In this document: one piece after another, positions 4,144-63,157 of the stretch
Layout of the letters: each line of letters opens with the position of its first letter
Numbering within the stretch: the first letter of the stretch is position 1
Assembly: GCA_965644495.1 (NCBI GenBank)
Contig: CBFFSA010000006.1
Location: forward strand, 620,001-684,000
Reading direction: 5' to 3'
DNA from: Perkinsela sp. CCAP 1560/9
Taxonomy: Eukaryota > Protista > Euglenozoa: Kinetoplastea
DNA length: 64,000 bases
The notes under the pieces: model-generated
The model's database searches: none
Told to the model about the DNA's origin: nothing
What the model saw: the letters and a program-made list of their open reading frames with translations, nothing else
Translations under genes and position numbers: made by a program

Positions 4144-7100
4144 ATGGTTTCCGTTCATTCATACAATGAGACTGAAAAGTCACACTTTGAGGAACTTGAA
4201 GCAGCCACACAATTGTGTGAGTGCTATGACTCATATGCGGAAGATTGCAATCCCACTTCTGACAATTGGAAAGAGGCTGTGTCTAGTGCAATACGCCTTC
4301 ACAATATTCTTGATTCCTATCTAGAGTTTCCTACCTTAATTATTCCTCATTTGGACTCTTTGTTAAACCCTTTAATTAGTTCTTTAGAAAAAACTTGCTT
4401 ATTTCGGGAAACATTGAGTTCGTCCGTGCAATTTACGCAAAACGATGTCCTTGATCTTCATGAAATGCCGGAGGTTCAGCGCCCTGTAAGTACTGGAATT
4501 CATTGTCAAAGTATTGTTTCAGGATTTGATGTAGATCGGATTCGATCCATGGAACATCTAATTTCCTACCTGTTATATTCTCATGTACGAATCGTGGGAC
4601 TTAAACACGTAATTACACGCTTCCCACACTCTACAGCAAATCTTTTACCCGTGTACTCGGCCTTACAAAGGTGGACAAGGACAACTCAAAACTGGTCAGA
4701 TTGGGAAATTTCATTCGTTCTTCTTTTGTGGCTTTCTAATGTAATAACCACGCCTTTCCCTCTTGAAAGCTTTCAAGATAATATAGTTCATCATTTGGTT
4801 CATATTGGCGAAACATTTCTTGCTCAACCCGGTCGACTTCAAGAGGCTGCTGTGTGTTTTTTATCAGCCATAACATGTAGACCAGATGCAATAACTGAGT
4901 GTGGTTCTGTAGTAAACTCTTTATGCACTCAAATTCTTCGAATGGATGAACCTAGTGCGAATTTGCTTGTATATCAAACAGGCGCTTTGCGCTTACTCAG
5001 TTCTTTGTGTAAGAAATTATGTCGCAATGGCATTGCCCGGCATATTCCACTGCTTTGGAAAACTATATCATGCATTATTGAACAGAGGGGAGTCAAGTTT
5101 TCGTTTTACAAAGGAGAAGTAAAGCTGGTTCAACGCGTTGTTCTCTTACATAGACCGGAAAATTCACTCACACACAACGATTGCTACATGAACACACAAA
5201 ACGAAATCACTGAGTTCGGGAAAACCTCTGGAAATTCTAATACCTTTCGCAACATTCTCGATCAAGATGTTGAGAAGGGTGTTAACTATCTTATACGTGC
5301 ACTTTGCTGTCGAGATACTGCAATCAGATGGAGCGCAGCCAAGGGCTTATCGTCGATTGCTTGTAGATTTTCAACTTTAATCTCGCGAGAAATACTAAGA
5401 GCTTGCACTGATTTATTAGAAGACAAAGAAAATGATGTTGCTTGGCATGGCGTTTTCTTAGCCTTATCTGAATGTATCAGAAAGGGTTGCTTTGAGCCCG
5501 GAGACATTAAGGAACTCCTTTCTTATTTCCGTTTTGCGTTGTCATATGACATTCCTCGTGGCGCTCATAGCGTAGGAACTCATGTTCGTGATGCCGCATG
5601 CTACTGGTTTTGGTGTGTAAGTCGTACAATATCGTCTTCTGCTCTACACCAAATTCTCGCCAGCGTTGCTCCTGACATATTGTTCCGGTCCTGCTATGAC
5701 AGAGAGGTTAAAGTCCGACGCGCAGCAGCAGCCGCGTTTCAGGAAGCTGTAGGTCGCACTACGGAGTTTCCACTTGGAATAGAAATGATAACTATGTCTA
5801 ATTTTTTCACAGTGGCCCGTCGCAGTGATGCTTTTCTTGATGTTGCACCAAAGCTGGCCTCATTGTCCGCAGAACTGGGCCTTCATTTCTTGTCCCAATT
5901 GATTCAAAAGAGCATTGGTCACTGGGATATAGAGTTTCGAGAACTTGCTGCCAAAGGTATAGGGGTACTCGGAAACATTTACAGGGAAATGATCACAGCA
6001 CAGTTTCCGCTACTATTGGAAAAATGTAGTAATCCGAATGCCTCTACTAAACATGGTGCACTCATGGCTCTTAGCTGTGTCATATCTTCGGAAGTCTTTT
6101 CAGAAGCAGCACTCAATGAAGTAGCGTACTCCTCTAATAAAATAACTGAGCCGGTTCTTGGTCATTTAAATATTTCTGATACCCTTACTATGCAAATTGG
6201 ACATTTAGTACCACAGTTACAGAAAAGTCATTCGTTTCGCAGTCGCCACGGCGAGCTGGTACGTATTGCCTCATGTGAGCTCGTAAAAAGTATCGCCTGT
6301 TCTAAATTACTCTTAACTCACATAGCATTTCTTAGGCCTCACTCAGGAACGAACCTGACCCTAGAAGTTCAAATTACGAAATCTTATCTGAATTTTCTGG
6401 AGGATTGTGCAACCCACCTGCTGGAAAGTGTCCGAAGTGCAGGAGCAGTCGCATTATACAACTTTCTTATGATATACTGTCCATACATTAACTTAAAAGA
6501 ATTAGTAGCTTGGGTGGATCGAATATTGGAGAAAAAGATCGCACAGTTACCAGTAAATGAGAGACGTGGTGTTTGTCATATTGTGGGCTCTCTCCCTTAT
6601 GCCATGTTGCAGATTGAAAATACAGTTGAAAAAATTATTAGTTCTCTTTGTATTGCGGCGAAAATAGAACGCGATATTGCACTTCGCGATCCAGAAACAA
6701 GACAAGCAGGCATACAGGCCTTAGGTAATATTGCTAAAAGTAGCTTCTCTCTCGTCCTGAAAGGCGGACTATTAGAACCGATTTTTACGACCCTAACGGC
6801 GTCTATTCAAGACTATTCAGTGGATCGCCGTGGAGACATCGGTTCCAATATACGTCGAGCTTCAATAAAATCAGGTGGTAAAATCTTAAGTGCGCTTCTT
6901 TATCAGGAAAAGGTATCTGATCAGGTTTACCGCGAGACTTCAAAAGTGTTTTTATGGTATACACAAAGTTGTTTACTCATGTGTCACGAAAAATTGGATC
7001 GGCTTCGAGAATTTGCAGCGAACTCCTTTTTTACTTTGTTAGAAGACCTTTCAAAGCGATACCAAATCAGATATCTTTCACTTTTTAAAGAAAACGATCT

Positions 7101-19849: not shown

Positions 19850-20071
19850 TTTTTGGCTTACTTACCAGACCACACGTTTTTTCGATCAGATGTGCCCCCT
19901 ACCTCTAATGGTAAGACCCCAAAAAACGTCCGAAATATGGGGAGAATACGAAATATGGGGAGAATCGGGTATTTGTACCAAAAGTTGGATTATTCTGGAT
20001 CGTTTCGCAATTTTTTCCTTTTTAGTCTCTTCATTAAACGCGGAAGCAGTTCTCAACGCGAAACGGGTAGC
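19850..20071 (-). repeat. Partial copy of the terminal-hairpin repeat family
   Basis: ttttagtctcttcattaaacgcggaagcagttctcaacgcgaa matches one hairpin arm plus the adjacent body of the 33275-33863 copy. Confidence 0.6.
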
Positions 20072-20437: not shown

Positions 20438-20964
20438 CACCCCCGCCAAAAAGTATTGTTCACAAAAATGGCCGACACAAAAAGTATTGTATTTATTAGT
20501 ATCAACCACTTTTTTGACTTTTGACCAGAAACGCAGGAACCTGAGGCGCGTAGGAAAGCCATTGAAAGATCAGAAACTCGCCGTAAAGAATCATTTGGAA
20601 TGTCGCGGAAAGCTAAGGCAAGATTTGAGCAGGCTCGGAATATGGTTCCTCTCGCGCACTATTTTAGCGTTGAGTAGTTAAAATAATTAAATCACAGTGC
20701 CAGTGCTACAAGAAGTGCCAGTGCTACACTTTTTCCTCGCAAAACCAGTTATTTAGATCTCGTGATAGTTACTAGTATTTTAGTTCTTATGATTCGACCT
20801 GTTTTTTTGCTTCACAGTACTTTACACAGATCCGATATGATAAGTGCAACTTTTTGGAGGTCAGTAGCAGCTCGTGGAAATCAACAAAAAGTATTCTATT
20901 TATTAGTATCGACCAAAACTTCGTGGTCGATACTAATAAATTACAGTACTTTTTGGCGGGGGGG
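20438..20964. mobile_element. TA-flanked MITE (Tc1/mariner-type)
   Basis: TA|CACCCCCGCCAAAAAGTATTGT … ACAGTACTTTTTGGCGGGGGGG|TA; internal repeats of caaaaagtatt.tatttattagtatc. Confidence 0.75.
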
Positions 20965-32050: not shown

Positions 32051-32258
32051 CCTCATGCTATTCCTCAGCATATAGGGGTACAAACTGCGTTATCAAATTC
32101 AAAAAATGAACCTGAATATTGAATTTTAGACCTTCAACCGGCTTTGAAAAACAAACCGCTGTTTCGCGGTGTTTCGCGCTGTTTCACAAACTTAACCCGC
32201 AGCCCCTCACATGTATCAACATCAAAGTACGTCCTTATGTCATAAGGACTCATAATTT

Positions 32259-32948
32259 AGGCTCTTCGTTAAACGCGGCGGTTGTTTTCAACTTAGAAGT
32301 CACTCATGCTGCGCGCTTCGCGTTGAAAACTACAACCGCGTTTAACGAAGAGCTTAAAAAAGAAAAATCTCCGAAAGATCATGAATAATCTCCTTTTTCG
32401 GGGGTAAATGCTCGATTTTTCGGCAACAATTGCGAAATTTTACACCGAATTTGGGCTGTTTTGGATGACTTACCAGTAGGGGCAGGAGTCGAATCTGTCG
32501 ACAAAAACGTCGTAGAATCGTAGCTGAGGTCCGAAACTCCTAAAACACGTTTTAGGAGTCGATTTTGGAAAAATAAGATTTTTACTTTTTTTTGGGTCTA
32601 AAAAAAGAATTTTTTTGGTCACCCCAAAAATTTCGGAAATTTTGACCTTGTCGGACCCCTCCCGCGCGTACCAGGGGGGGGTGGAAAATTATCGCCGCGG
32701 TATACTCTACCACTTCCCTACGCTCGATTTTGAAAAGCAAAAAATTCGAAAAAAAAATCGCGACGTATGCCCCTCCCCCCTGGATCCCCCATTTTTTCGA
32801 ATTTTTTTTTCTGTTTTGGACCACCGGGGCCCCCTTTTATATTTTTTTCTTCTATTATATTACTGTGTTCCTCTTTATTTTTTCACTGTTTTTGATCACT
32901 TTTTTTTCAATAATCGAGGGTAGAGAGGTAGTTATAGAACCACCGCAA
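32259..32948 (+). repeat. Terminal-hairpin repeat family, copy A (left arm of the 1.6-kb foldback)
   Basis: ~95-bp hairpin at 32259-32354, then body ending …aaccaccgcaa; homologous to 45525-46432 and 62681-63157. Confidence 0.85.
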
Positions 32949-32956
32949 TAAGCATA

Positions 32957-33274
32957 CCGTATACCCCCCCCAGTAAGGTACCCCCCCAGTAAGAGAGATT
33001 TGGCCCTTCTTGGGCTGACCCCCAGTAAGAGAGATTTGGCTTGGGAGCCCAACAGGGGGCGTATAGGGGGTAGGGGGTGAGCGTCTGCATGTTGAGGGCC
33101 TCGGGGATAACCCAAAGAAGCGTTTTAACACGTTTTCAGAAGCAAAAAATAGAAAAAATTGTCAAAGAAGTTGGGAGAAAAGAGGAAACTGGCCAAAAAA
33201 GCATACCCCCCCCAATAAGAGAGATTTGGCCATTTCGACCCAAGACCCATTCTCCTCCTGGGGGGCGTATACGG
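32957..33274. mobile_element. TA-flanked MITE with CCGTATA termini (Tc2/pogo-like)
   Basis: TA|CCGTATACCCCCCCCAG … CTGGGGGGCGTATACGG|TA; internal cccca.taagagagatttggc repeats. Confidence 0.8.
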
Positions 33275-33863
33275 TAATAGAAGAAAAAAATATAAAAAGG
33301 GGCTCCGGTGGTCCAAAACTGAAAAAACAAAATTGAAAAAAATGGGGGATTTAGGGGGGGGGTCCAGGGGGGCATACGTCGCGAAATTTTTTTTCGATTT
33401 TTTTACTTTTCGAAATCGAGCGCAGGGAAGTGGTAGAGTAGGCCGCGGCGATAATTTTCCATCCCCCCCGGTACGCGCAGGAGGGGTCCAACAAGGTCAA
33501 AATTTCCGAAATTTTGGGGGTGACCCAAAAAAAAGTAAAAATATTCTTTTTCCAAAATCGACTCCTAAAACGCGTTTTAAGAGTTTTAGACCTCAGCTAC
33601 CATTCTGCGACATTTTTTTCGCCAGATTCGCCTCCTACGTCTATTGGTAAGGCATCAAAAACGGCCCAAATCTGGGGTAAATTTTCGCAATTTTCGCCTA
33701 AAAATCGAGCTGTTTCACCCAAAAAAATAGTTATTCAAGATCCTTTTTTGGCGATTTTTCTTTTTTAGGCTCTTCGTTAAACGCGGTGGTAGTTTTCAAC
33801 GCGAAGCGCACAGCATGAGTGAGTTCTAAGTTGAAAACAACCGCCGCGTTAAACGAAGAGCCT
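33275..33863 (-). repeat. Terminal-hairpin repeat family, copy B (inverted, right arm of the foldback)
   Basis: Reverse complement of 32259-32856; hairpin at 33767-33863. Confidence 0.85.
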
Positions 33864-34259
33864 GTGTTATTGTTGTTGTTGTTGTTGGTAACAAGAGCGC
33901 CTGCAATCCCCACATGCAAGCGCCGCAAGTACCACTCCAGCTCTCGGGCTCGACCCGAGTACGGGGACGCAAGGCTATCTTAGGTCGCTTCACCAGTGAC
34001 AATGAACACTCCGTAGTTAGCCTACCATGTGTCACTCCCACTGGGAGGGTTCCTGTTCGAGCACGAACGCCGCGTTTTGGAAATGCTGTGTATCATGGGA
34101 TACATACCACATATTACATGTCTGAAGATTCTGATTCGCGAAACCCTATCGTCCTACTGACGAACGTCGTACCAAATTCTTTATACCTATTCCACGCGTA
34201 CTGCAAACGGGTCCACGTGTTTAATCTCCTAGACTCAAGATCCGCTTGTGTGTAGTTTA

Positions 34260-37478: not shown

Positions 37479-37514
37479 AATTAACGATAAAGATACAGTT
37501 TCTGTACCTTGTTG
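37479..37514 (+). other. Spliced-leader exon-like sequence at the 5' end of the CRE element (no GT donor)
   Basis: AATTAACGATAAAGATACAGTTTCTGTACCTTGTTG contains the conserved kinetoplastid ACAGTTTCTGTAC core and ends in TTG; 29/31 identical to 9527-9557. Confidence 0.8.
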
Positions 37515-40500
37515 CTTTTCTTTCCTACTGACTTACAATACACCAATGAAAGACCCTCGGTCAGGGGGGAAACTGTGGTGTTGTCACTGTGGCACACGTT
37601 TTGTCCCACAGAGCCCCTCCCATCGCTTTCGCGGGAATTGCTCATCCAAATTCGTGTCTCCTCCCACACAACCTGCTATCAGGTCGTATCCGCCGCGCAA
37701 GGCTTTCGCACCGAAATCACTTCCCTCCCGACGCCCGCAAGAAATCCTGTGTGGGCTGCTCCGCCCCTTTTTACCCAGCGAGACCGTACTTTCGGTGGTG
37801 CGAGCCTTGCTCGGTATCACAATCGAACGCTTAGTCAGAATCCAAAACATGCGAAGTCCGCTCCTCCTCCTTTACCCCCGCGCGCCATTACTTTAGACGC
37901 TGCGATGAGTGTGACTTGCTACCCCCGCAGAAACGCACCATTGCTTCATCGTCGAAGCCCCCTCGTATCACCGCCTCCGCGAATCACATCCGTAGTGTGA
38001 CCTCAAAACTTTCGCCGCAGTCCACCGCCCCCTCCAAGAGAACTTATCGGTGCACATATGCTCAAGCACTCGAGTCACATTTTGGCGAACGTCCGAAGCC
38101 CTCTTTCGCTCCAATGGGCTGAAATACAAGCGCGCCCAAAGTGGTGCGACACCGCGCACTTACTCTCGATGAGCGCTTCTCATTAATTGAAAAGGCTCAG
38201 AAGGAGTCTCGGCCCCAGGTTATGAAAAGAACTCGGACGCCTAATGATGGATTCCTGGCCTATATAGAAGCATGCTCGGAAGCACACGAGTTCTCCTCAG
38301 CCGTGGCACAGCTGCTTGTCCAGGAGGAATTGTCCCGACACAAGATTTACGTCGCCAATTTACAGGTCATAAAACAGTACCACATCGCCTTGACCCGTAA
38401 ACTATCCATCACGAAAAAGCTGGGGCACGTATGCTCCACATGCAGCAAGCAATTCATGGACGCTTCACTCCTCCACGAACACCAACGAACCCATCTTGAA
38501 CATGACATTAAAAAGGCCTTCCGATTAGCTTTGGAAAGAGAGAAGACCCTCCTAGAATAAAGTAAAGCCTTTGAGACCGTCCTGTTGCCCATGGCCCGGT
38601 ACTCGGGCCTGCCTCACGACAGCCCCGATTCCCCTCTCGAGAAATTTCCGATATCCCCATAGAGGAGTGGATGTACGACGACGACAACGAGCGGGAACCG
38701 GGAGACACTAGTATAGATGTACGCCTGTGCTTTTCCCCGGACTCCGCTGCAAGTATACAGATAAAACAAATATCTCCCAGCCATTCCCTACAATTCGTCC
38801 GCGACAGGGTCTTTGAACACCGGTCTGCGCAACGAACTCGTGACCCTCTGCGAAACTCACTCCGGAAACAGCTTTGACCTAGACTGTGCCATTGGACAAC
38901 TTCCCGCCGGTACCTCTGTGAGCGCAGCGCTTCAATGCGCTTCCCAACCTAGCACGATCCCTCGCCACAGGACCGCAGTCTTTAGCTATCCCACGGGACG
39001 CACCCTTATCGTCATCCCCAAGATCACACCCCCCGACCGGTATCACTTTGCCCTTTGCAACCAAATCGGGATCGACACGGAATTTGCCTCTGCCTGGAGA
39101 GAGATTCCCTCCCAGGACGGACCGCTTTGGTGTTACGCCCCAGCCGAAGGCCTGATTGCCAAATCTGGATGGAGTAAAACGCAGATAGATATCGGTCTTA
39201 TGCGAGGGGGGGTGGAGGGGAACCCGGGCCCTCGAAACCCTTGTCCACACTTGTTCAGATTTAAATTTTCTCCGAAAACACAGAACACGTTGCTCCCCCA
39301 AGCATTACGCAACCCAATTTCCTTTTTTCCCTCCTCGTCGCTCTCCTCCGAAACGGGATGGAGCCGAATGTGCATGAAAACTGAACTTTTTCGGGGCGGG
39401 GTGGAACAAAACCAGGACCCAACACCTCGTACTCGGCTAAACGATCACTTCTCCTTCAATCTAACGACCGTTCTGCAACCCCCTTTTCCAGCTGGCATCA
39501 AGATGAAACCCGGGAATGTCCTGCCGAAGGCTGTTCCTGGAAAACGACTTCTCACGGCGGCCATTGGAAGGCCTTTTTCAAGCACGTAGCGACTCGACAC
39601 GGAGAAACCATCCCGGAGGATTGGTGGACCCTGCAGGGACGCTTCCTTTGCACCTCATGCGGACGAAACTATGATCTGGGAAAAAAAGACTCCCACCCAG
39701 GTACGTGCAGAGTGATCGATCTCGGCTCCCGCCCTATCATACATCCCCCTGGTACACCATCGGACACTTCCAGTTTCGCCGACGAAAATGCGGTTCCCAT
39801 CCCGGCGCAGGAAATAGAAGTCTCGGCCGTGCTGCCCTCCCTCGCTGAAATATGCTCTATCCCCATCAACACCTCCAAAAATGTCCCAGCCCGATGCCGC
39901 CAGCAATGGGCAGTTGTTCTCACCGGGGCTCTGTACGAGGTTGTGAATGACAACACAACCACTTCCTGGACGCTACTTGCAATGCTGCCAAAACGCGTGC
40001 TCCCCGCTCCCTATCGAGGAGGGCGGAAAGGGTTTACATCCTACACTAACTTCGTCAAACAGCGTTTACAACTTTGGCAAGCTCGTGATTTTTCCACCCT
40101 CTGGAGAGGTGCTGTCAATGGCCTCCAAAAGAAGCGCTCGATGCGCACCCGGGAAGGAATCGACGAAGAGACCCGGTCAGCCGTCCGTGCGGAACTCCTG
40201 GCACGATAAAGCGAATTTTCCAGAGCCATGACTGCGCTAACTGCATCACCTTTAGCACCGAATTCGCCCGAAACACTGTCCAAGCTGCAGGACAAGCACC
40301 CCAGTCGTCTCCCGCCGCCTACTTTCACCCAAACTTTCACTCCAGAGAAATCACATAGCCCCCTACAGCTCTCAGAAAAAGAAGTCGAGATGGCGATTAA
40401 AGCTTTTCACCGAGGTTCGTCGGGAGGTGCCATGGGACTTCGACCAGAACATCTCCGGGAGGCCTTTCTGGTGAATGCCGACTCTAGAGCTAAACCCTTA

Positions 40501-44878: not shown

Positions 44879-45524
44879 TACCAGAATTTAAGGTAATATA
44901 CCCCAATTCATGCCATATTGTTACAGTTTTGGACGTATGAAGTGCGCTAAAGAGGAAATAATGTCTGTTTTGAAGAGATCTCGGCAGGGGCTCCCGCGGA
45001 AAAATATTGCAAGCAACTGAAATATCGCATTGTGGAATCTTGTGTCGACCTAAAAAGTCAATTTTGACTGAAATTGTGGAACCTTCTGTCGGCCTAAAAA
45101 GTCAGTTTTGACGGAAACTTTTGTTGGAGAAGACGGAAAGGATGGGTCAGAAGAAGAGAATATTAGTAATATTCTAATATTATATTACTACAACTTCTAC
45201 AATCTATTAAGATTAGACGGTCAGCGCCAGTACTACCGGAAAGATGGCTGTTTCAGAGAAGACCACAAGGAGGTCCCGACCATTCTTTCTCATGCTGAGT
45301 GTGTCCGGCATCAGTGAAATTTACTTAGTAATTTACTTATCAAATTACTTAGTAATTTGATTATAAAAATAATCAAATCTTTCTTAAATACAGGTCTTAC
45401 TATCATACCAAAGTAGATACTATAATCTATCCAATTATCTTTATCTCACGAAGAAAATACCAAAAGGGATTGTATCCTTTTCCCCCTTTACATAATGCCC
45501 ATGCACTGTGCTAATTTCTTTTTT

Positions 45525-46432
45525 AGGCTCTTCGTTAAACGCGGTGGTTGCTTTCAACTTAGAAGTCACTCATGCTGCCCGCTTCGCGTTGAAAACTACC
45601 GCCGCGTTTAACGAAGAGCCTAAAAAAGAAAATTTAGCCTGGAAAACGGAAAGATTATAGCCAAAAATAGCCGAATTTCGGGTAGAAATGGGGTGATTTT
45701 CGCGTATTTTTGCTCTCAGAGCACTAAATCCGACATTTGCGCGTGGGAAATCACTCGCAGGCATGAATGAAAGCCTACCGAACTTCTATTGGGTAGAGAA
45801 TGCGACTCCAACCATACCATTCTTTCGACACAAAAATGCCCCTTTAGGTCCGAAAAATACTTTTTCACCTTTTTTAGTCAAAAATGGGTCATTTTGGGGG
45901 GCGCACCACAGTTCGAAGAAGTGATACCTTGCGAAAACAACTGCGTAGAAAGCTAGTGTAGGTCCCAAACTATCAAAATACAATAGGGGAAACGATTTTG
46001 GAAAAATATTTTTTTTGTCATTTTTTTCGCCAAGTTGAAATTTTTTTCAAAAAAAAATTTCCGAAAAAATCCGAACTTGGCGGACCCGTCCTGCGGATAC
46101 GCGGGGGGGTCACCCCCGGGTAGGGGGGTGGAAAATGCGCGCCAAGACCCCGGCTACCCTTTCTGCGGTTTTTTTTCGAAAACTAATTTTTTCGAAAAAA
46201 TTTGCTCGACCATGCCCCCCCCCCTGGACCCCCCCCCTGGACCCCTCCCATGGACCCCCCCCATGGACCCCCCATTTTTTTCAAAAATTTTTTTCAGTTT
46301 TGGACCACCGGAGCCCCCTTTTATATTTTTTTCTTCTATTATATTACTGTGTTCCTCTTTATATTTTCACTGTTTTTGTTCACTTTTTTTTCAATAATCG
46401 AGTGTAGAGCGGTAGTTTTACAACCGCCGCAA
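45525..46432 (+). repeat. Terminal-hairpin repeat family, copy C
   Basis: Hairpin at 45525-45621 (palindrome extends to ~45510-45638); 3' part nearly matches 32760-32948 and ends …aaccgccgcaa. Confidence 0.85.
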
Positions 46433-46499
46433 TGTTAAGAAGTTAATAATTCACCCGATTTTCACCATTTGCTACACACTCTTGCATCCCTCTTTAAAA

Positions 46500-49067: not shown

Positions 49068-49234
49068 TCAATAAGTATTCCTCCGGCAAAATATGCTTGT
49101 AAATGATAGAAATGCATTAAAAACGAATTATTTTGAGAAAATACTTGAAAACACAAATACATTAAAAATATATATATTTCAACTTTTTTTCTGATTTTTT
49201 GATACATTTATGGTCATAATTATTTTTCTTTTTT

Positions 49235-49560
49235 AGTCTCCTCGTTAAACGCGGTGGTTGTTTTCAGCATATAAGTCACTCGTGCTGCGAGCTTCGCGTT
49301 GAAAACTACCTTCGCGTTTAGCGAAGCGACTAAAAAAGACAATCTGGTCGGGAAAGCCGAAGAAACCAGAAGGATTTAAGCTAAAAATAACTTAAAGTTT
49401 CGTGTTTTGCTCTTAGAGCACGAAGAGTTGCGGGAAATTACTTGTAGGCGTGAATAAAAGCCTATAGAACGTAACTGGTCCATACCGTTCTTCCGACGGA
49501 AACAGACCCCTTTGGGTCCGAAAATTGCTCTTTCGCATTTTTTAGCTAAAAATTGCACGC
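49235..49560 (+). repeat. Terminal-hairpin repeat family, copy D (partial)
   Basis: Hairpin at 49235-49331, then body homologous to 45620-45890. Confidence 0.8.
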
Positions 49561-62406: not shown

Positions 62407-62680
62407 TTCATGGGTCGGTTTGTTTGTTTTTCACACCGAATGGTCTTGGTATTTTAGTTAAGTAGTTTTCGTATCGCTGGACACTCTTATTCTTTCTGTT
62501 TATTTCTCGGCAAATAAGTTGACTAATTTTCTGTAGACAAAACATGAATCGAGAAATGCCACATCAATTTCTAATTTTTTATTCGATTTGTGAAGGTATC
62601 ACACAGCATTAATTTCTCGACATACATATCCTATTGTTACAATTCGATACAATATGTATGTATAGAATTTTTCTTTTTTT

Positions 62681-63157
62681 GTCTCTTCGTTAAAAGCAGT
62701 GGTTTTTTTCAACTTATAAGTCACTTCGCATTGAAAACTACCTCCGCATTTAATGAAGAGACGAAAACAGATAAATTGTCCAGGCAAGAGAAAGAAACCG
62801 CAGGGATTTGTGCCAAAAAGTAGTCACTTTTTCGCTGAAACTCGGGTTATTTTTCTGTATTTCGCGCGACCATGCCCCCCTTGCTCGGAAAATTGCTCGA
62901 CCATGCCCCCTCTGGCCTCCCTAGACCCCATTTTTTCGAATAGTTTTTTTTCAATTCTCAACTCACCCTGCTGGATCCACCCTACCCCGGACTCCATAAA
63001 GAAGGGAGAGGCAGAGGTTGTAAACAACCCCCGCAATAACGCGTCATTTATGAGCCTAGGTCATAAATTATACTTTGTTTCGTTTTATTTTTTAACTGAT
63101 TTTGTTCATTTTTCTTTAATAATCGAGGGTAAAGTGGTAGTTATACAACCACCGCAA
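62681..63157 (+). repeat. Terminal-hairpin repeat family, copy E (internally deleted)
   Basis: Degenerate hairpin at 62681-62762 and the same 3' end (aatcgagggta…gtagttatacaaccaccgcaa). Confidence 0.8.

Follow-up and report, generated by a model that had tools for sequence, protein, structure and literature searches.

The 64-kb stretch of DNA analysed here (the window) contains long intron-free ORFs, mostly on one strand, and at 37480-37516, next to a retroelement, a spliced-leader-type exon with a conserved CAGTTTCTGTAC core, which we take to match the kinetoplastid spliced-leader pattern and which is the one feature through which the host group was judged here. The window also carries a hairpin-bearing repeat whose 20-nt arm motif is found eight times (chance expectation, zero), at the sites where an earlier sequence-only reading had placed its copies, as self-comparison confirmed. 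The full copy, 693 bp long and a member of what we call the '695' subfamily, lies at 32256-32948 on the minus strand, as delimited by self-comparison, genome-wide copy ends and boundary divergence. In the orientation of the Rep gene described below, which we use throughout, this copy runs from 32948 (5′) to 32256 (3′). The 3′-terminal palindrome (32259-32355, minus strand) consists of a 29-nt loop between 34-nt arms that have a single conserved A-A mismatch, and is flanked by a short A-rich tail (TAAA; 32256-32259, minus strand) on its outer side and by an internal run that extends its stem (32356-32367, minus strand) on the other. At the 5′ terminus (32925-32948, minus strand), TTGCGG is followed by a 22-nt mini-hairpin, and the adjoining flank base is A. 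The hairpin had been correctly recognised at 32259 but not the left end of the element, which runs 3 nt further to 32256 and includes the short run there.

The remaining window copies differ in completeness. A second '695' copy (33275-33864, plus strand), inverted with respect to the first and 84% identical to it, is without element positions 1-94 and has its terminal palindrome at 33767-33863. The member of a 912-bp subfamily at 45515-46433 (minus strand) agrees with the 695 family in the 180 bp at its 5′ end and in its terminal palindrome, and its interior matches non-coding sequence from the 5′ and 3′ regions of the autonomous element. Self-comparison further revealed a diverged member of a 481-bp subfamily with both termini present (62666-63157, minus strand) and a palindrome-bearing fragment with a full 13-nt tail (49223-49389, minus strand), for which a matching 5′ end was not found nearby; together with the arm motif, it also revealed a half-palindrome remnant (20020-20062, plus strand). 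Three copies do end at one point, the mini-palindrome, as had been noticed (32948, 46433 and 63157). An ORF scan of the 693-bp copy gave only short ORFs with alternative start codons, none of note, and Rfam produced zero matches in the window at gathering thresholds. A known RNA gene was rejected as an explanation of the hairpin, permissive Rfam scans returning generic long-hairpin miRNA-precursor models far below threshold.

Between the two '695' copies lies an unrelated 320-bp TIR MITE (32955-33274, no strand assigned) that is not of the Helitron-like family, has at least 40 genomic copies with identical ends and sits at element position 94/95 of the second copy. This position is a TA-rich site (TAATA|TAATAG) and an insertion hot spot within another transposon: three different TIR elements have inserted there independently, namely the 320-bp MITE, a AACCCCCGCTCACG-ended element and a CAGTGG-ended Tc1-like element with a TA duplication (window 32955-33274; L010 2104-2821; L021 740-1500; L024 569-1500).

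Copies, ends and insertion site

The hairpin repeat is real and not a chance pattern. In the 21-Mb assembly, at least 40 near-full copies have the same start and stop, bearing out the expectation that both ends are conserved genome-wide, and the terminal hairpin alone gave 687 first-look candidates, of which 40 were scored and all proved 98-100% identical. Contigs from public sequencing runs that derive from other copies part from the window sequence exactly at 32256 and 32950. These runs are short unitigs that yield boundaries and rough relative depth and showed no circular junction, excision product or presence/absence polymorphism, and the summed depth of both termini, ~1000x that of unique flanks, is only a rough guide to abundance. 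Interiors within the 695-bp family have pairwise column identities of ~81-89%, and the 695-, 912- and 481-bp families have their first ~90-220 bp and last ~50-190 bp in common with the autonomous element.

Element ends were analysed on 350 kb of sequence. The 5′ boundary is sharp in 46 independent flanks, with the junction reading A|TTGCGG in 43 of them. The 3′ tail varies from 3 to 13 nt, reproducing an A-rich 13-mer from its first base onwards, and is followed by T in 43 of 46 copies. The tail is always complementary to the T-run across the palindrome in the same copy, even in two copies with a variant run, and hence the full palindrome reaches up to ~125 nt (97 nt without this extension). 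Across subfamilies its column identity is 96%, and 95% of its cells are paired; compensatory cells are in modest excess (5, against 1.2 expected from shuffling), in a sequence too conserved for a strong covariation test. Folded as single-stranded DNA, the hairpin has an energy of -38.9 kcal/mol (z = -9.1).

Hairpins are present at both ends of the element, and the mini-hairpin at the 5′ end resembles a collapsed inner part of the large palindrome. The two having the same bases, both ends probably present the same Rep-binding module. These shared bases form an 11-nt asymmetric inverted repeat, one copy of which occupies element positions 3-13 while the other lies inside the palindrome's 3′ arm, the arm nearest the 3′ end. 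The sequence-only reading had seen neither a TIR pair nor a target-site duplication (TSD). It was right about the second and wrong about the first, the mini-palindrome that it had related to the arm being this 11-nt asymmetric terminal inverted repeat.

No TSD was apparent in 14 full copies, whose flank words (k = 2-6) matched with no excess over shuffled pairs. Consistent with this, one element (L022 572-1466) splits a repeat of which paralogues without the insertion have ...TAA|TTCG..., against ...TAA[element]TTCG... at the filled site, with nothing duplicated; this is the single clean empty site, and its paralogues differ by one base at the junction. The TT at the start of the element and the A at its end leave the boundary ambiguous by 1-2 nt, A|T being the simplest reading of the insertion site. 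Bases upstream of the A|T site are W-rich, and the base following the first flank T is again T in only about half of the copies. The T|T (or T|C) insertion published for HLE2 is not what the junctions display, nor is the TT insertion without TSD that had been expected from the window, the site reading A|T and being TSD-free at the one empty site. A flank paralogue of the C51 cluster (window 20596-20676) has an A|TT context on the 5′ side, its 3′ side being unpaired. Two other candidates for empty sites were discarded: the repeat to which the left flank of the window copy belongs breaks off 43 nt before the insertion, and the paralogue of the 3′ flank of the autonomous copy on contig C8 is 100% identical but has different upstream sequence, so that it offers no simple empty site. 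An uncharacterised dispersed repeat (around ...CGCTACCGTAGGTTAA..., with GTGCCCGATTT-type short tandem motifs), found in L022, L046, L057 and L012, has been the target of at least two independent insertions of the Helitron-like family.

Head-to-tail arrays occur on several contigs, and the tail-to-head junctions present in the assembly carry spacers of 0-8 nt that have T first and A last and differ between junctions. Frequent insertion only a few bases away from the end of an existing copy, in the same orientation, gives rise to such arrays. At one locus (L050 741-1062, G000:C51), three tandem 105-bp units consist of only the first ~105 nt of the element, each with a terminal purine run before T that resembles a normal 3′ tail. 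Solo 35-38-nt fragments of the 5′ end stand directly ahead of full 5′ ends at three loci (L050/L058/L023/L061 junctions). The orthologous ENA contig L061 and contig C60 have the same junctions, with no presence/absence difference for the Helitron-like family.

The autonomous Rep-helicase element

A search for long copies encoding an HUH Rep and helicase, suggested by the sequence-only reading, led to a 12.9-kb element with both ends of the repeat. Helitron_like_N matched the genome 17 times, 15 of them above the cut-off, with one match inside an open frame of 2975 aa on contig C8. This ORF combines DUF6570 (E = 2.7e-11), Helitron_like_N and a PIF1 helicase, with an HUH motif (LHFHS) at residue 1826, the two-tyrosine YxxKY motif (YLIKY) at 2041 and a Walker A motif (GGPGTGKS) at 2549. 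For an endonuclease domain, Pfam gave no match in the 2975-aa ORF or in the ORFs downstream, and a PDB sequence search with the Rep region gave no match.

Over 10 kb, the autonomous copies of contigs C8 and C4 have 99.76% identity, whereas their flanks are unrelated. The sequence they share begins precisely with TTGCGG and runs precisely to the TAAAA that follows the palindrome, which defines a mobile unit of 12,861 bp. This unit and the window repeat, which runs antisense to the gene, have both ends in common. In its first 1.7 kb, the autonomous element consists of ~1.8 tandem units of the 912-bp family with halved palindromes, and the 912-bp family in turn appears to be essentially the autonomous element without its genes, that is, the 5′ plus 3′ non-coding parts. 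The master copies are full-length and apparently intact, and with at least one open Rep-helicase gene and two copies 99.8% identical, the family has probably been active recently.

Several further features of the autonomous element were observed. The N-terminus of the Rep-helicase (residues ~180-580; L048 ~5430-6610) contains five tandem Cys/His-rich units of 89 aa, encoded by 267-bp DNA repeats, and the number of units varies among the C8, C4 and C51 copies. Downstream of the Rep-helicase, a 259-aa ORF (L054 3865-4641) has an RRM_1 domain (27.6 bits, above the cut-off) and is possibly a cargo or accessory gene of the element. A weak match to the twister-P1 ribozyme (24.4 bits, E = 0.03, far below the gathering score of 67.2) begins 42 nt past the Rep-helicase stop codon (L054 3852-3922; G000:C8:161851-161921).

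Classification and polarity

Helitron-like elements of the HLE1 group have TC...CTRR termini and insert at A|T, whereas HLE2 elements have short asymmetric inverted repeats, end hairpins, T|T or T|C insertion and the DUF6570 marker, Helentrons adding an endonuclease (PMC11417382, PMC5148889, PMC13085455); DUF6570 itself has been proposed as the HLE2 marker (PMC11417382). The Rep-helicase described here is ~30% identical to its nearest relatives, and the closest 24 full-length relatives among 1.84 billion representatives contain DUF6570 in 20 cases and an endonuclease in none. The contig of one distant relative (P0002) breaks off inside the element. With DUF6570, an asymmetric repeat (11 nt, HLE2 repeats being ~11-18 nt long) and hairpins at both ends, and no endonuclease, the family is best filed as Helitron2-type HLE2, a placement that rests on the domain marker and a nearest-neighbour proxy. 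We conclude that the window repeat is very probably a non-autonomous member of this type, presumably mobilised in trans by the Rep-helicase of the 12.9-kb autonomous elements with the same ends. The sequence-only reading, which had proposed a non-autonomous element resembling Helentrons or DINEs, thus had the rolling-circle nature right, given a Rep-helicase element with the same termini, but not the Helentron affiliation, since a partner without endonuclease makes the repeat Helitron2-type. Three features set the family apart from the HLE2 type: the dinucleotide it targets, the very large size of its palindrome and a ragged 3′ tail, whose variability is unlike what strictly site-specific cleavage predicts.

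The closest described architecture is that of the Helitron2-type FoHeli1 and FoHeli2 of Fusarium oxysporum (PMC5148889), in which the bases of the 5′ hairpin recur inverted inside the 3′ hairpin, 38-51 nt (~40-50) from the end (PMC5148889). In common with these, our family has a Rep-helicase without endonuclease, DUF6570, a hairpin at each terminus, no TSD and abundant non-autonomous derivatives (PMC5148889, PMC11417382), as well as an asymmetric terminal inverted repeat, ~12 nt in FoHeli1/2, whose 3′ copy is part of the 3′ hairpin and is located 20-40 nt from the end (PMC5148889). It differs in having a palindrome of 97 nt (to ~125 nt) with a conserved 29-nt loop instead of a short stem-loop, a TTGCGG start and variable A-rich tail instead of TCAG...ATTTT, an A|T site instead of TNAT|T or T|T, and a kinetoplastid-type protist as host. 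Like DINE-1/HINE, the Helentron derivatives of Drosophila, the repeats are short, very abundant and non-coding, with subterminal inverted repeats and a 3′ stem-loop, and are often tandem or nested, but the Helentron partners of DINE-1/HINE encode an AP endonuclease and insert in TT, whereas here there is no endonuclease and the site is A|T (PMC4067079). Canonical Helitrons (HLE1, such as Helraiser) likewise have a Rep-helicase, A-T insertion, no TSD and a hairpin marking the 3′ end; that hairpin is short and 10-12 nt from the 3′ end, whereas the palindrome here is ~5x longer, 5′-TC and CTRR-3′ are replaced by TTGCGG... and ...GAGCC plus an A-rich tail, and terminal inverted repeats and DUF6570 are present. 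The bacterial HUH single-strand transposons IS200/IS605 have subterminal hairpins at both ends that are recognised by the HUH enzyme, no TSD and insertion beside a short specific sequence, and our element appears to resemble them in these respects; they are prokaryotic and much smaller, with a one-tyrosine enzyme and no helicase.

In the mechanism that we propose, the HUH/two-tyrosine Rep would nick one strand at the A|TTGCGG junction, and the fused Pif1-type helicase would peel the nicked strand away in the 5′-to-3′ direction. Once single-stranded, the ~100-nt terminal palindrome would fold and mark the end, acting as terminator; a cut in the A-rich tail just past it would release the strand, presumably by way of a circular intermediate, which would then be inserted at another A|T site without duplication of the target. 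For the non-autonomous copies, these steps would be carried out in trans. We lean towards transfer of the gene-sense strand.

The main competing view retains the same rolling-circle family and reverses the polarity, in a manner like 'HLE2-reverse', and we consider it a serious though less likely possibility. The antisense strand would then move, with the big palindrome and variable T-run as the initiation end, and the mini-hairpin, separated by AA from the T of the flank, as the termination end. The 3′ end would in that case be classically Helitron-like, with a short hairpin rich in GC close to a sharply fixed terminus, a few bases on, that adjoins T, and the ragged end would be the 5′ end, published Helitron left ends varying more than right ones (PMC11417382). 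Reverse ORF orientation and 5′ stem-loops are, moreover, documented in FoHeli3-5 and the proto-Helentron (PMC5148889, PMC11417382), and the solo 35-38-nt end fragments can be read as tandem right ends from end bypass. Against this, the gene is in sense in most Helitron-like elements, and canonical HLE2 has a terminal repeat at the very 5′ end and a subterminal repeat with a stem-loop at the 3′ end, which matches the gene-sense model. Every structure examined, namely the composite 5′ region of the autonomous element, the solo fragments and the 105-bp tandem units, fits both polarities.

That the repeat is primarily a satellite or tandem repeat spreading by recombination, as the head-to-tail arrays with their 940-960-bp period on several contigs and the 105-bp tandem units might imply, is improbable: most copies stand alone at scattered sites, sharply bounded and between unique flanks, the differing 0-8-nt spacers at array junctions point to repeated adjacent insertion rather than to amplification of one junction, and tandem arrays are a known by-product of Helitron-like elements.

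We hold it very improbable that a DDE transposase moves the repeat as a foldback or MITE-type element, with the hairpin as one long TIR whose other half was lost or has diverged. The same genome does have many TIR MITEs and Tc1/IS30-type elements, and the window contains a 1.6-kb inverted copy pair (32256-33864), but this apparent foldback is two separate copies, 84% identical, with the unrelated MITE between them. The element ends have only the 11-nt asymmetric repeat in common, a TSD is absent, and both termini are shared with the Rep-helicase element and not with a DDE gene.

Scarcely credible, too, is the idea, also raised from the window, of a self-priming linear replicon (rolling-hairpin or protein-primed) whose hairpin ends have been integrated into the chromosome or lie there as fragments, for despite the long terminal palindrome with its loop and a tail that complements the run across the hairpin as fold-back synthesis would yield, a check of flip/flop orientation found that 45 of 46 hairpins have the loop facing the same way with respect to the element body (flip-flop predicts about half each), the big palindrome is at one end only, copies are chromosomal insertions dispersed over many contigs with unrelated flanks, the coding partner is a Rep-helicase, and the suggested search for PolB found no protein-primed enzyme (DNA_pol_B_2) above threshold in the genome. 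The sole copy with a flipped loop (L025 1501-2225; G000:C11:317171-317895) is flanked by an imperfect ~28-nt direct repeat and may be a recombination or repair product and not a normal insertion.

To return to the Helitron2-type reading, its peculiar ends invite a more specific proposal, which we advance as speculative and rather doubtful: a deep-branching Helitron2-like lineage in an early-branching kinetoplastid might use one hairpin module at both ends (22 nt at the start and 100-125 nt at the end), with a 3′ boundary determined not by one cleavage site but by how much of the A-rich tail pairs with, or is refilled from, the T-run across the palindrome. If true, such definition of an end by tail pairing would be a mode undescribed for Helitron-like elements and nearer to the hairpin-guided logic of bacterial IS200/IS605.

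Occurrence in kinetoplastids and assembly-related features

In the literature searched, Helitrons are stated to be absent from kinetoplastids. A survey of 57 trypanosomatid genomes found no DNA transposons (PMC12278014), only Merlin elements have been reported from Bodo and Perkinsela (PMC8101967), and Helitron-like ORFs were mentioned for Diplonema without analysis (PMC10161547). Our literature search found no description of this Perkinsela Helitron-like family. New here are the group to which the host belongs, the giant size of the palindrome and the use of A|T as target. The claim of an undescribed element made from the window consequently holds for the family and not for its kind, the element being of a known type and classifiable. 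The family accounts for a visible share of a 21-Mb kinetoplastid-type genome and extends the host range of rolling-circle transposons, and its presence supports the loss of class II elements by trypanosomatids rather than their never having had them. With its large conserved palindrome and matching mini-hairpin, it offers a clean natural system for the study of end recognition and termination by Rep-helicases, which are poorly understood in HLE2.

The family also explains many repeats and tandem arrays in the assembly and probably some of its contig breaks. Terminal palindromes form arrays with a 940-960-bp period and recur within a few kb of contig ends (array and contig-end palindromes at G000:C8:133276-135309, C14:1248-4822, C4:1116881-1129515, C49:25-130 and C18:1299-1404). 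The family is possibly a marker of subtelomeric regions or a source of breaks in the assembly.
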